64,000 nucleotides of DNA from Octopus sinensis (Eukaryota), in contig NC_043026.1 in the NCBI RefSeq assembly GCF_006345805.1, positions 248,001 to 312,000 on the forward strand, given 5' to 3'. Below, one piece after another: positions 24,986 through 62,935 of this stretch. Within the stretch, counting starts at the first letter, position 1; each line of letters starts with the position of its first letter. The notes under the pieces are model-generated. The model was not told where the DNA came from. It ran no database searches and worked only from the letters and a program-made list of their open reading frames with translations. A program made the position numbers and the translations under genes.

Positions 24986-26447
24986 TTTCCCCAACATCAC
25001 AGAGACAAAACCTCAGATATCTACACACACGCACAACGCTCGCACACACACGTACACACACATCTCTTTTACATATAGTCTGGATAGTCGTGAACTGGAA
25101 CAACAACAACAGCTCTCAGAAAGAGAGAAAGAGAATGATAACTCAAAAGACCGATATTGGATACAATATTTATATGGATTCTTTATTAACAGGTAAAACG
25201 TGACTTATGTGCATCACCAGTGGTGGTCAGCTGGATTGGGTGAATGTGAACAACAACAACAGCTGGAATAAGAGAAAGAGAATCACAACTTCAAAGACCG
25301 ATGTTGGATAGAATATTTGTATGGATTCTTTATTAAAAAGTAAAACGTGACTTATGTGGATCAACAGCGGTGGTCAACTGGATTGGATGGACGTTAACAA
25401 CATCAATAGTATTAATGGATATCAAGAGCTGGGTTAGTTCTGCTGCCTCAGGCGGATGAATATGGCCATGGAGTCTGCTAATGCATAACCTGCAAGTAAC
25501 AAATAACACCATCAACAACAAAAAGACATTCAAAAATATCATGGGAGGGCTTTATACGTGGTCACTCGAATTACTAGAAATAGCAATCGATTCTCGGTCA
25601 GAATGCTTTTATTCATAAATCAGCTCAATCAAGCCTGATTGGTTGCTGAACAATAAATTTTAGTACTACTACTCACAGTAACACACACACACACACACAC
25701 ACACACACACACACACACACACACACACACGCAGAAGATTCAATATCACTTACCGTTGTTCCATATGACTTTCGATTTTGTATCAGAATAATGAAATATA
25801 GGGTAGTGATCTGACTTTTCGTACTGACAGTCATGTGGTCCCTCATTGATGGTCAACCAGCCTCTATCCCCTTCACAATTACCAAGTATTGTTATATAAA
25901 AGCGACGTGTAAGACTAAGGAGTTAGAAAAAGAAAAAACTTATTTGGGTTTCAGAATATGAAAATCTAAACATCTATTAAATAGACTAGTATGTCCGCTA
26001 TACGCAATTGAATTAGTCAGTGTTTAATTAAAAATAGCCATCTGTGTATCATACTAAATGTGTATACACACAAAGATGTGGGTTTAAACACTCACACACA
26101 TAAAAACACACATATGCACTGAAACACGCACACACACACACGTACGCACACACATACACACACACACACATACACACACACACACACACACATGCTCACA
26201 CAGACACGCAGAAATGCGCAAATGTCAATACACCAACAAAGGCGAAATTACACACGAGGCAAACACTTTGGTACAAAAATAAATAAATCCACAAACGGCC
26301 ACAAACATACGAGCGATTACATTTTCCTCTATTAAACATCTTATCAAAGCGCTAAATAAATATAAAACGAATTCTAGTCAAAATAAATTATATAACGGAA
26401 CATAAAAATATCTAAACCCAACGCATACAAATAAATATAATTATGGT

Positions 26448-26882
26448 AAAGTGGCTGTGTGGTAAGTAGCTTGCTTACCAACCACAAGCTTCCGGGTTCA
26501 GTCCTACTGTGTAGCACCTTGGGCAAGTGTCTTCTACGGTAGCCTCGGGCCGACCAAAGCCTTGTGAGTGGATTTGGTAGACGGAAACTGAAAGAAGCCC
26601 GTCGTATATATGTATATATACATATGTGTGTGCGTGTGTGTATATGTGTGTGTATGTGTATGTTGTGTGTGTGTGTGTGTATGTGTGTATGTGTATGTGT
26701 GTGTTAGTGTGTGTGTGTTTTACGCACCAACATCCCTTGACAACCATAACTTAGCGGTTCGGCAAAAGACACCGATCGAATAAGTACTACGCTTACAATA
26801 AATAAGTCCTGGGGTCGATTTGCTCGACTAAAGGCAGTGCTCCAGCATGGCCACAGTCAATTGACTGAGATAAGTAAAAGAG
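26448..26882 (+). mobile_element. SINE family 1 in intron 3 of copy A (counterpart of 57493-57920 in copy D)
   Basis: Head GTGGCTGTGTGGTAAG, TG microsatellite and 3' body; same intronic position and gene-relative orientation as in copy D. Confidence 0.88.
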
Positions 26883-27699
26883 CACATTAAGGTGAAAATA
26901 TATTTTCGTGTTTCCCACTTTGAAACATGCTTCTTGATGTGAAATCCAGGAAACTGAGCTGTTTGTCACGGGAAAACATTTAATTTAAAAGTGTGTTGTT
27001 AAAAATACGGAAATATATTAGCAATAGAGAAATAACCTTTTTCGGCGGCGGTGGAATTGCAGTATTAGTTCAAATTTGCATTTTGTATATTATAATAAAT
27101 GAAGATATAATGTTGAAAGCCTGGAGATGCGTTGTTCATCCCCAGAAAGTGTCGCGTCGAAATGTATAGTGTTAAAATTTATCTCTAGCGTACGTAAAAT
27201 GACTTTTTTAACATTATAGGTCTCTACATAAAAAAATAAAAGAAGATGAAATATATATTTGCATACATATATCCCTCAATTGAGAATTGAACTCCGGTGG
27301 CTGAAGCTAGGTCGTTCCACGGTGAATTTTTCAACTTTTCGTGAGAGAACCAGCTTTGAAGGTTTGTATTTCGTCCATCAAATATTATAGTTACCACATC
27401 TGTTTTGTTTTTATAAATCACCAGTTTCACCTGTAAAATAAATGATCATGTAGCACACACATACAACCACATACGCTTACAACCACGCACGCACATACAC
27501 ACATAATCAAAATAAATGGATCAAGTTAATTAGATCGAGGTAATTCAATATGTATTTCCTTCACTGTTAGCTTAATGTCCACTCTCATTTTTACTTCGTA
27601 ATTCTCTTGACCGAAATTAATCTGTTTAACATGCGAAATTAATGACTTTGATTGGTCACTCGCTCCATACGTATCTTTTTTTTCCTGCCTTTAACCCTC

Positions 27700-27960
27700 C
27701 AACGCGGAGTATAGGCCACTTAGAGTTGAATTCCATGTCGCATAATTTTTCACTTCTGTACTTATATTCTGCCATGAATGTCTCCCTTTCTCTAGTTCCT
27801 TCTGTGTTGATCTACGCCATGAGTTCTTAGGCCTACCATACTTTCTATATCCAGCCGGATTACACTGTAAAGCACTTTTCGCTATATTTGGTGTGTCTTT
27901 TATAATTGTGCTACGAATCCACTTCTACTTTTTCTTAAATATTTGCTCCCTAATCGAAAC
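27700..27960 (-). mobile_element. RTE-clade LINE 3' fragment in intron 2 (also ~40380-40680, 46200-46400, 55800-56130, 62305-62520)
   Basis: Translates [39 protein letters not shown], matching the RTE C-terminal motif ALxWxPxGxRxxGRPxxTWRR. Confidence 0.75.
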
Positions 27961-60184: not shown

Positions 60185-60947
60185 GTGGCAGCTCTCCTGG
60201 AAGTGTGCACCAAAGGAAAATATGGATCAGTGAAACTGCTTCTCTAATCTGAATATGTGTCAGGGGCTGCAATTCTTCGCAGGCTTTCAATACAAGTAAG
60301 GAACAGCGCTCTACTGCGTAGAAGTATTTACGAGAAGAGCGAGAAGTTTTAAATGGCCGGACAAGCGTGAAATACGAGCAGTGATAAGGACACCCATTAA
60401 CCGTCACCGGTGACGTGGAGATTTAACAATTTACAGAAATGCTTCTGGCGAACCAACGATTTCCCATTGATGAGATGGCTTATTCTCTGCAAATTATTAT
60501 CGTTCTGCATCCGCGACAAGCTTCGGTTCTGCAGAGTTAGTGCGAGAAGGGCGCCAAGAGAGCATTTCGATGTGAATAAACGCAATCGTGTGAATCTTTG
60601 TCAATTCTAACTCGAAAGCTTCAGCGATGAAACTAAAGTTGTTTTGAGGGAGCGTAGACACGATTGATGAAATCGGGGCCCATAACTTTGAGCCAGAATC
60701 CAAAATGTTTAGTATGAAGCGGAAACGACACGAATCACCAGTGGAAAAGAAATTCAAGATTCAACCTTCGGCAGAAAAACGTGATGGTAAGCGTTTTGGG
60801 GATGCAAAAGGGTCTATATTGCAACATTGTCCCTTAGATGAGGTCTACAGTGAAATGTTGGTTAACAAAGGGAAACCAGCAATTCGTAACAAACGCCGAT
60901 GTCTATTATTGTAAGACAATGCACGCCCATATTCAGCCACCCACACA
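60185..60947 (+). mobile_element. Mariner remnant, copy D flank
   Basis: Near-identical to 43917-44672; ends at (GATA)n. Confidence 0.85.
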
Positions 60948-62771
60948 TAGATAGATAGATAGATAGATAGATAGATAGATAGATAGATAGATAGATAGAT
61001 AGATAGAGAGAGAGATAGATAGATTGATAAAGCAATAGATAGATAGATAGTTAGATTACCTTATAATAAAGCACCGTTAATTCCTAAGATACATGTAAAA
61101 ACATACAGAGTGAAACTGGTGTGAACTGTTCGTGTTATGCTTCGATGTCTGTAACTGTTGGCGTGTTTATTTGTAATGAAATGAAGAAAATTATCTATTA
61201 ACACATCAACTATCAATGGTTGAAATTAAGAGTGTACACAGGTGAGGACTATGTTCTTGTTCCATCATCCACGGTGATTGATTTCAATGATTTCCTATAA
61301 TGAAAGTCTTCGGTATAGCGACCTCAATTGTTCTGCTTTTATATCTCCACTCACAGAAACACCAACATCACATCACGCTATCACCAGGTATTAAAACTAC
61401 AACGTCACTATCACAAACACCGCAACAGCCTTACTGCTAACATCGGAACGACGTCAGTAACCACACAGCCGTATTTTCTGCGAGCTTAGTGAAACGCATG
61501 TCTCTATTGAAGGCCCTTTTATTCTTCATAGCAATCAAAGGAGACATATTGGAAAATCTGGTTTATTTTCACTTCTGTGGAGAAACAGTCATATTAGTAA
61601 ACAGTCTTGAACTGAGTTGATGGTTCTGTGTTTTGCTCATTTATGGACAGTCTATACGGTTTGATTATTTATGGACAGGCCTAAGTCTGTAAGTAATACT
61701 GATAAGAGAAATTAGGAGAGAAAGCAGTGGCCAGTACTGACAGTTACGAAGTGTTCAGACATCTGAAGACACAACTGTGGGTAATAGAGGGTAATATTGA
61801 CGGGAAAAGACAGTAAGGGAAACAGTGAAAAAGTTGTGACATTCACGAACCATCCTAACAAGAAGTCCTTACAGAACCACCTGAAGTGTGCGCTCTCCGC
61901 CCTACCTCACTGAAAGTAAGTGTGCTTTCTATCACATTGCATTTTATGTGTTCGGGTACGTGTTATGGCTAGGATATGTTGCAGTTAAGATTAGAGTGTG
62001 TGTGTGTGTGACAACAGTTGAAATAAGGGTGATTCTGCGTGCAAACGCCAATCTTGCGCTCTTCCAATTGTTGTATCGAGTAAACGCTCTCTCTCTCTCT
62101 CTCTTCCACACGCACATACACACTGTTTCCCTCCCCTTCTTCTCTCTCACAGCTATATATATATATATATATATATATATATATATATATATATATATAT
62201 ATATATGTATGTATGTACGTATGTGTGTGTATATATATATATATATATTTATATATGTATGTATGTATGTATGTATGTATGTACTTACATACATACAGAC
62301 AGACACCAAATATAGCGAAAAGTGCTTTACAGTGTAATCCGGATAGATATAGAAAGAAAGGTAGGCCTAAGATCTCATGGCGTAGATCAACACAGAAGGA
62401 ACTAGAGAAAGGGGGACATTCATAGAAGAGTATAAGTACAGAAGTGAAAAATTATGCGACATGGAATTCAACTCTAAGTGGCCTATACTCCGCGTTGGAG
62501 GGTTAAAGGCAGGAAAAAAAAACATACGTATGGAGCGAGTGACCAATCAAAGTCATTAATTTCGCATGTTAAACAGATTAATTTCGGTCAAGAGAATTAT
62601 GAAGTAAAAATGAGAGTGGACATTAAGCTAACAGTGAAGGAAATACATATTGAATTACCTGGATCTATTTAACTTGATCCATTTATTTTTATTATGTGTG
62701 TATGTGCGTGCGTGTGTGGTTGTAAGCGTGTTTGTGTGTAGGTGTGTGCTACATGCTCATTTATTTTACAG

Positions 62772-62935
62772 GTGAAACTGGTGATTTATAAAAACCATAC
62801 AGATGTGGTAACTATAATATTTGATGGACGAAATACAACCCTTCAAAGCTGATTCTCTCACGAAAAGTTGAAAAATTCACCGTGGAACGACCTAGCTTCA
62901 GCCACCGGAGTTCAATTCTCAATTGAGGGATATCA
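62772..62935 (+). pseudogene. Copy E: extra exon 3 with an in-frame TGA replacing a conserved TGG
   Basis: Intact TTACAG acceptor and CA|GTATGC donor, 164 nt; CTT CAA AGC TGA at 62850-62852 where all other copies have TGG. Confidence 0.85.

Follow-up and report, generated by a model that had tools for sequence, protein, structure and literature searches.

A birth-and-death gene cluster of Octopus sinensis encoding a predicted PAN-like protein with an unnamed, fibrinogen-linked C-terminal domain

A stretch of 64,000 nucleotides of the Octopus sinensis genome (NCBI RefSeq assembly GCF_006345805.1, contig NC_043026.1, positions 248,001 to 312,000 of the forward strand; hereafter the window, whose own numbering is used for all coordinates) contains, at positions 25434-62935, a cluster of a five-exon gene in which one of the five copies (D) is intact and the other four (A, B, C and E) are damaged. 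Copy D encodes a protein of 296 amino acids (aa) with a signal-like N-terminus, a PAN/apple-like module and a C-terminal domain from an unnamed family that is linked to the fibrinogen-related domain (FReD). Here it is proposed, with moderate confidence, that D represents an octopod-specific family of ~296-aa two-module proteins acting as secreted, diversifying binding or recognition factors; secretion, the binding function and any immune role are what we infer from the evidence set out below.

Gene model of copy D

Copy D lies on the forward strand and has an open coding sequence of 891 nt, with GT-AG boundaries in all introns and intron phases of 1, 0, 2 and 1. Its exons are:

47666..47996, forward strand: exon 1, with the start codon, the hydrophobic signal-like segment and the putative PAN/apple module; residues 1-110; phase-1 donor
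50259..50437, forward strand: exon 2, where the C-terminal domain begins (SQWIKTYAIS ... CRGTFCPNFFRHP)
56375..56538, forward strand: exon 3, VKLLIYK ... FDGRNTT ... SWFS ... SIEGF
58432..58592, forward strand: exon 4, RRFYI ... CEGDRGWL ... C; the segment most variable among paralogs
58846..58901, forward strand: exon 5, YGLADSMAIFIRLRQQN and stop

D has 98% identity to O. sinensis LOC118768578 (296 aa), a gene with an annotated range of 243 kb. The two proteins differ at 7 of 296 residues, all of them in exon 1. The splice model of D is supported because LOC118768578 is identical to it across all four junctions and because the exon boundaries recur at about the same positions in a distant relative, P0056 (locus L001, BAAFZT010000067.1, assembly GCA_054771915.1). 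The five-exon plan with these phases, and its splicing to an intact product of 296 aa in copy D, had been put forward in an earlier sequence-only reading of the window and were borne out by this splice reconstruction.

N-terminal segment and PAN/apple module

The N-terminus of D contains a hydrophobic segment with a Kyte-Doolittle peak of 2.26 over residues 13-25, consistent with a signal peptide. Three N-x-S/T sites can be read in the sequence of D, and the family has conserved pairs of Cys. The following residues (35-110) are best read as a degenerate PAN/apple module without the inner disulfide, an identity that the evidence supports because of structural matches to PAN folds, same-architecture relatives positive for PAN_1, and the position of two Cys residues on the outer disulfide. 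In the AlphaFold model of full-length D, the predicted local distance difference test (pLDDT) is 74 overall and only 56-80 in the PAN region; Foldseek matched this model to the PAN/N domains of plasminogen (4dur) and HGF NK1 (1nk1, 2qj4) over 80-86 columns, with a root-mean-square deviation (rmsd) of 2.4-3.0 Å, a probability of 1.0 and E-values of 0.02-0.09. The octopus profile gives end-to-end alignments with proteins of 250-310 aa from other molluscs, and in eight of ten non-octopus proteins of the same architecture the region that it covers exceeds the PAN_1 cut-off. C65 and C86 do not vary across 19 paralogs; in a weak alignment to the apple domains of MIC4 (E 3.6) they fall on the outer Cys pair, the inner pair being absent.

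The octopus module has the fold, a helix packed on a beta sheet, and the 'C...FTYN.....C' core motif in common with the PAN/apple domains of plasminogen, of the HGF N domain and of the apicomplexan apple lectins MIC4 and SML-2. It differs from them in falling below Pfam thresholds, in having a single invariant Cys pair and in apparently missing the inner disulfide. Both the hydrophobic N-terminal signal and the resemblance to a PAN/apple domain without its inner disulfide had been noted in the sequence-only reading, and both are upheld here, the first by the hydropathy peak and the second by the Foldseek matches, PAN_1 in relatives, the invariant C65/C86 and the MIC4 alignment.

A widespread C-terminal domain

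The C-terminal domain of D is globular and has ~185 aa. Pfam has no model for it in D, in 40 domain sequences or in 107 full-length relatives, and sequence searches of the PDB gave no meaningful match to it with D, the profiles A1 and A2, a 19-paralog profile or the 40 domain sequences. The earlier statement that it can be assigned to no named family stands after these searches. PDB matches to TTK kinase and S-layer entries (E ~0.05-1) were taken as chance, and a weak match to DUF7922 in one amphioxus protein did not recur.

Profiles A1 and A2 serve here to define the unnamed family. Among 1.84 billion cluster representatives (50% identity) searched by profile, 1,120 matched at E<=1e-3, including 664 at E<=1e-10; A2 against a word-indexed protein database again returned only octopus proteins. 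The domain of copy D is a full-length match to the A1/A2 family and has its conserved motifs (W...W, HYR/FFR, VK.xxY, FDG..S...WFS, RRF.I, C..D.GW...C and AD..AIF). Sampled carriers include amphioxus, crinoids, a starfish, a hemichordate, bivalves, gastropods, a flatworm, corals and Myxococcota. Judging from these profile matches, the C-terminal domain is ancient and widespread, not peculiar to octopus.

Proteins of the family have a single copy of the domain or up to four in tandem. The commonest partner domain is PAN_1, present in 21 of the 107 representatives, and the other partners are C-type lectin, F5/8C, SUEL, WSC, Sushi, EGF, TSP1, VWD, ZP, GON and fn3; several members also have coiled coils N-terminal to the domain. 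Among the bacterial members, the Myxococcota proteins P0090, P0238 and P0242, which include giant ones of ~2,200 aa, have the C-terminal domain together with a fibrinogen-type A subdomain, described below. The presence of the domain in Myxococcota suggests that it either is old or was transferred horizontally between bacteria and marine animals.

Link to the fibrinogen, collagen C-propeptide and intelectin domains

In five relatives, the motif 'C..G.Y.iDP....VyCDMttDGGGWTmV', that is, the A subdomain of fibrinogen-type domains, directly precedes the C-terminal domain. These are the metagenomic proteins P0093, P0097 and P0106, the Myxococcota protein P0090 and the coral protein P0140. The domain has its first Trp in the GGGWT of this motif; in copy D the corresponding Trp is that of SQ-W-IKTYAIS. 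Among 142 full-length domain matches, 11 have an upstream 'GG(G)W', nine of them with the full A-subdomain motif. In this stretch Pfam recognises positions 4-52 of Fibrinogen_C and positions 22-70 of the collagen C-propeptide domain (COLFI). A profile of the A subdomain plus the core of the domain matched fibrinogen, tenascin, tachylectin-5A, FIBCD1, angiopoietin, ficolin and intelectin chains in the PDB, with E-values down to 1e-10; these matches span profile positions 5-70 and so reach ~20 residues into the domain. The same span was aligned by hhalign to a bona fide FReD with a probability of 97.8%. The octopus proteins lack the A subdomain (Cys pair plus 'CDM..GGGWT') and keep the Trp strand alone, after the PAN module. 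We conclude that the domain belongs with FReD, COLFI and intelectin among the globular domains that stand behind a fibrinogen-type A subdomain, and that the octopus lineage replaced the A subdomain with PAN.

Homology of the core itself to the B and P subdomains of FReDs is plausible but unproven. Fibrinogen_C matched none of the 40 domain sequences at E<=10. Aligned by hhalign to P0294, a FReD template that covers Fibrinogen_C positions 2-219 (E 3e-80), the core profile A2 gave a probability of 0.1%, with a single-sequence template of low sensitivity, and only the W-strand was aligned, in the expected register. The AlphaFold model of the domain alone, from which the A subdomain is absent, has a pLDDT of 88 and a predicted template modelling score (pTM) of 0.86. 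Its Foldseek top 50 are mostly FReDs, at template modelling (TM) scores of 0.34-0.41, rmsd of 8-10 Å and E-values of 0.2-1, with no match at E<0.1 or TM>0.41, so that we may be dealing with a core of separate fold that is only paired with the A subdomain. Foldseek matches to TLDc and galectin (TM 0.18-0.30) were rejected as chance. The hint in the sequence-only reading that the Trp-led start recalls fibrinogen-like domains is thus supported for the leading Trp, which is the GGGWT Trp of A-subdomain relatives, and not for the core, which has no significant profile or fold match (TM <=0.41). The structural comparison suggested for the spliced D protein recovered the PAN fold and left the C-terminal domain without a significant PDB neighbour.

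It is quite possible, if short of probable, that the core is a fold of its own and not a diverged FReD, the A subdomain being a separable module recruited by several unrelated cores and octopus keeping its last strand. In line with this, sequence similarity to FReDs ends ~20 residues into the domain, the core does no better against a full FReD than the hhalign and TM values given above, and another group of 48 sequences has the same A subdomain followed by a different remainder that does not match the octopus-type domain. FReDs nevertheless dominate the Foldseek list of a model that contains no A subdomain. The order of motifs, as we read them, also appears to parallel that of FReDs (W-strand, beta hairpin, 'FS..G', Cys-bridged 'GW' loop and hydrophobic C-terminal strand).

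The proteins of that other group (P0248-P0292, ~48 proteins of 200-380 aa) are mostly metagenomic, with some from coral, and their remainder after the fibrinogen/COLFI A subdomain ends in '...IFVR'. Their hhalign comparison with the octopus domain is not significant, and they may be another unnamed branch of A-subdomain domains.

Compared with FReD proteins (ficolins, tachylectin-5A, FIBCD1, angiopoietin-like proteins and the fibrinogen-related proteins, FREPs, of gastropods), whose A subdomain is common to the relatives of the octopus domain, the octopus family is alike in having a globular head at the C-terminus, with coiled coils before it in some relatives, and in a Cys-bridged 'GW' loop, which lies within the most variable part of the octopus domain. 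Like snail FREPs, it is a diversified multigene family. The octopus domain differs in its length (~185 versus ~220 aa) and in its lack of an A subdomain and of a Fibrinogen_C match, and its N-terminal partner is PAN instead of an immunoglobulin superfamily (IgSF) domain, collagen or a coiled coil. Gastropod FREPs have one or two IgSF domains and a canonical FReD, whereas Pfam and Foldseek found neither an Ig domain nor a canonical FReD in D; the resemblance to them is functional and evolutionary only.

In intelectins or X-type lectins (intelectin-1, XEEL), likewise, only an N-terminal FReD-like stretch is recognisable before a diverged globular body. The A-plus-core profile matched them (E 1e-7 to 1e-9) only by way of the A subdomain that the relatives have; they are absent from the Foldseek top 50 of the domain model, and the intelectin-specific region was not detected. 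The 'YWIDPN...VYCDM' of the bacterial and coral relatives fits COLFI positions 22-70 better than Fibrinogen_C. Unlike COLFI proteins, the family has no similarity beyond the A stretch and no collagen repeats, and there is no COLFI among the Foldseek matches.

Copies and organisation of the cluster

Motif scans, together with blastn and tblastn of the copy D exons against the window, found exactly five full or partial copies (A to E) at 25434-62935 and none elsewhere in the window, in agreement with the at least five copies of the sequence-only reading. All follow the gene plan of five exons with phases 1, 0, 2 and 1, as far as their exons are preserved. Outside copy D, they consist of:

31071..31397, reverse strand: copy A exon 1, 1-bp deletion in a T-run, frame shifted
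30164..30342, reverse strand: copy A exon 2, open
27267..27430, reverse strand: copy A exon 3, open
25754..25914, reverse strand: copy A exon 4, open
25434..25489, reverse strand: copy A exon 5, open
36180..36340, reverse strand: copy B exon 4, remnant
35862..35917, reverse strand: copy B exon 5, remnant
37074..37401, forward strand: copy C exon 1, upstream ATG changed to ATT; in-frame ATG at 37107
38121..38299, forward strand: copy C exon 2, open
40938..40997, forward strand: copy C exon 3, 5' piece, 1-bp deletion
40998..41228, forward strand: insertion of 231 bp resembling a short interspersed nuclear element (SINE), splitting copy C exon 3, flanked by a target-site duplication
41229..41351, forward strand: copy C exon 3, 3' piece, beyond the insertion
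42315..42475, forward strand: copy C exon 4, open
42742..42797, forward strand: copy C exon 5, open
62772..62935, forward strand: copy E exon 3, with an in-frame TAG (TGG to TAG, Trp to stop)

The five exons of copy A (25434-31397) all have good splice sites; the deletion in exon 1 (TTT to TT), which shifts the frame, may be either genuine or an error of assembly in a homopolymer. Copy B is a remnant of exons 4 and 5, with exons 1-3 not found in the window. In copy C (37074-42797), the upstream start codon is lost and an in-frame Met is kept 11 codons downstream; the insertion in exon 3 has a target-site duplication of 19-20 bp on both sides (40979-40997 and 41230-41248). Copy E is exon 3 only; its exons 1-2 were not found upstream, and any exons 4-5 would lie past the end of the window.

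Compared with itself, the window contains a patchwork of segmental duplications, both direct and inverted, of 84-95% identity. Copies A and C are inverted duplicates, placed head-to-head, and the recurring duplicated unit comprises exons 3-5 and ~3.5 kb of downstream flank. Exons 3-5 of D and their flanks have a counterpart in A and C, whereas exons 1-2 of D and their flanks have no close one. The duplicated blocks contain repeats and open reading frame (ORF) fragments resembling those of long interspersed nuclear elements (LINEs).

The best explanation of the cluster is a birth-and-death array, tandem and inverted, of an octopod-specific gene family. Rapid birth and death, as anticipated in the sequence-only reading, is supported by the pseudogenes, the truncated copies and the segmental duplications; its description of the cluster as expanding is not, with four of the five copies in the window damaged, and "birth and death" is the better term. 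It is rather likely that the cluster is largely a gene graveyard, in which all copies but D, and perhaps A, are debris of segmental duplication with no role: A is frameshifted, C has a deletion as well as the SINE-like insertion, only parts of B and E are left, E has a stop codon, and repeats and LINE-like fragments lie within the duplicated blocks. This account is compatible with the proposal of a diversifying octopod family and forms part of it. D, for its part, is intact, with all its differences from the O. sinensis counterpart in exon 1, and the sole lesion of A is a homopolymer indel that may come from the assembly.

Two kinds of repeated element accompany the gene copies. An interspersed repeat of ~400 bp, with 82-88% identity, lies in their introns and flanks at:

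24592-24986: ~400-bp repeat
29594-29994: ~400-bp repeat
34826-35227: ~400-bp repeat
43291-43690: ~400-bp repeat
49216-49621: ~400-bp repeat
59393-59783: ~400-bp repeat

A 184-bp tandem version of it is found at 24033-24945. Repeated ORF fragments with a common ending are present on the forward strand at 40592-40840, 46119-46448 and 62213-62425; these resemble fragments from the 3' part of a LINE-type retrotransposon that were copied together with the duplicated flanks.

Diversification of the octopod family

At least 54 octopod relatives of D are present in the protein database, from O. sinensis, O. bimaculoides, O. vulgaris and Argonauta hians only, and most members lie on one large contig per species. 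All 54 are labelled uncharacterized or hypothetical, except three with automatic UniRef domain or enzyme labels, and a literature search found no paper on these loci or on an octopus PAN or apple family. Leads to the argonaut eggcase matrix and to molluscan EGF/ZP shell-matrix proteins were dropped, as the literature gave no paper on this family.

The octopod paralogs are exon mosaics. Pairs of them have exon 1 at 92-97% identity and exon 4 at 33-52%, or the reverse; thus, P0001 and P0004 are 93% identical in exon 1 and 50-57% in exons 3-4, whereas P0001 and P0002 are 58% identical in exon 1 and 93-94% in exons 3-4. This mosaicism, together with the match of D to copies A and C in exons 3-5 and not in exons 1-2, suggests that recombination or gene conversion took place in the long introns.

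Variability is concentrated in one segment: column entropy is highest across residues 211-280, at 1.5-2.3 bits, against 0.4-1.3 bits elsewhere in the C-terminal domain. This span takes in the last part of exon 3 and exon 4, with the conserved C...GW...C loop. Among the copies in the window, the ratio of nonsynonymous to synonymous differences (pN/pS) is 0.4-0.6 for exon 2 and ~1 or more for exons 3-4, from small counts and mostly pseudogenes. With four of the five copies damaged, the ratio is suggestive for exons 3-4 and was not taken as a sign of positive selection, given the small counts and the confounding pseudogenes.

Proposed function

In the mechanism proposed here, the protein with its PAN module and FReD-like head would be a secreted, soluble binding or recognition factor, possibly lectin-like, whose two modules would supply the binding surfaces. 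The specificity of the paralogs would be varied by duplication and by exon reshuffling through recombination, and further changed by divergence concentrated in exon 4, around the C...GW...C loop. Secreted recognition is proposed because D has a signal-like N-terminus, N-glycosylation sequons, Cys pairs and relatives among extracellular binding domains, and because the partners of the domain across phyla are rich in lectins and the variability of this recombining multigene family falls mainly in one segment. From these resemblances, a role in immunity like that of snail FREPs or ficolins would be an attractive inference.

Several points weigh against the proposal. Pfam found 0 families in copy D even at E<=10, missing both PAN_1 (PF00024) and Fibrinogen_C (PF00147), and the comparisons of the core with FReDs by hhalign and Foldseek were those given above. 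The Ca2+- and acetyl-binding (S1) residues in the P subdomain of FReDs are not evidently conserved in the octopus domain, by reading of its motifs. The high pN/pS of exons 3-4 may reflect relaxed constraint instead of diversifying selection, with counts too small for significance, and the partner domains suit matrix or egg-coat roles as well as recognition.

The proteins could be structural components of mucus, of the cuticle or sucker lining, of the egg coat or of another extracellular matrix, with paralog diversity arising from relaxed constraint, which we consider unlikely. In other phyla the same domain occurs within large mosaics with ZP, VWD, EGF, TSP1, fn3 and GON, typical of matrix and egg-coat proteins, and PAN domains are also present in such proteins. 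The octopus proteins, by contrast, are small, with two modules and no polymerising ones, and their variability lies in one segment and is not evenly spread; lectin-type partners (C-type, SUEL, F5/8C and WSC) are at least as frequent.

A salivary-gland, venom or digestive secretion, expanded under predator-prey selection, would also give a lineage-specific, tandemly amplified family of small, Cys-containing, secreted-looking proteins with quick turnover. Such a pattern of lineage-specific, tandemly amplified and fast-turnover genes is common among venom gene families. This explanation is nonetheless improbable, as no known toxin family was matched in Pfam, the PDB or Foldseek, no paper was found that links octopus to PAN/apple domains or names these loci, and close relatives of the same architecture are found in filter-feeding animals without venom, Mytilus for example. 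The secreted recognition factor is the reading favoured here.

Other features of the window

A 170-bp satellite of ~74 copies with 98% identity occupies positions 543-13111, and its unit has a tRNA-like B-box motif (GGTTCCGGGTTCAGTCCC), which suggests that it may be derived from a SINE. Because of this satellite, the first 12 kb of the window are GC-rich (0.49) and GC-skewed. An array with an 84-bp period encoding C2H2 zinc-finger repeats, interrupted by stops, lies at 14167-16480 on the reverse strand (longest ORF of 160 aa, 15631-16113) and probably belongs, in degenerate form, to the large C2H2 zinc-finger expansion of octopus. A 51-bp tandem repeat of ~38 copies with 82% matches is found at 18936-20899, with higher-order periods of 154 and 205 bp.

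Implications

The loci are already predicted in public annotations, and the gain lies in interpretation and not in new loci. The novelty is in taking the protein to be PAN joined to a member of a large unnamed family linked to FReDs, and in the evidence of mosaic diversification at the level of exons. In a broader picture, which is advanced only tentatively, octopods may have dozens of secreted recognition proteins that join PAN to a FReD-like head, diversified by exon reshuffling and by one hypervariable loop-bearing exon, as a cephalopod counterpart of snail FREPs; their C-terminal module would then be an unnamed ancient family, extending from Cnidaria to amphioxus and Myxococcota, and a fourth branch of the group in which FReD, COLFI and intelectin share the A subdomain.

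The family of the C-terminal domain comprises more than 1,000 clusters at 50% identity from marine animal phyla and some bacteria, and it lacks both a Pfam model and a solved structure. A definition of the family would annotate many proteins now called 'uncharacterized', and would clarify how fibrinogen-type, collagen C-propeptide and intelectin domains relate through a common N-terminal subdomain. Innate immunity and extracellular recognition are poorly mapped in cephalopods, and this octopod-only family provides concrete candidate recognition molecules.

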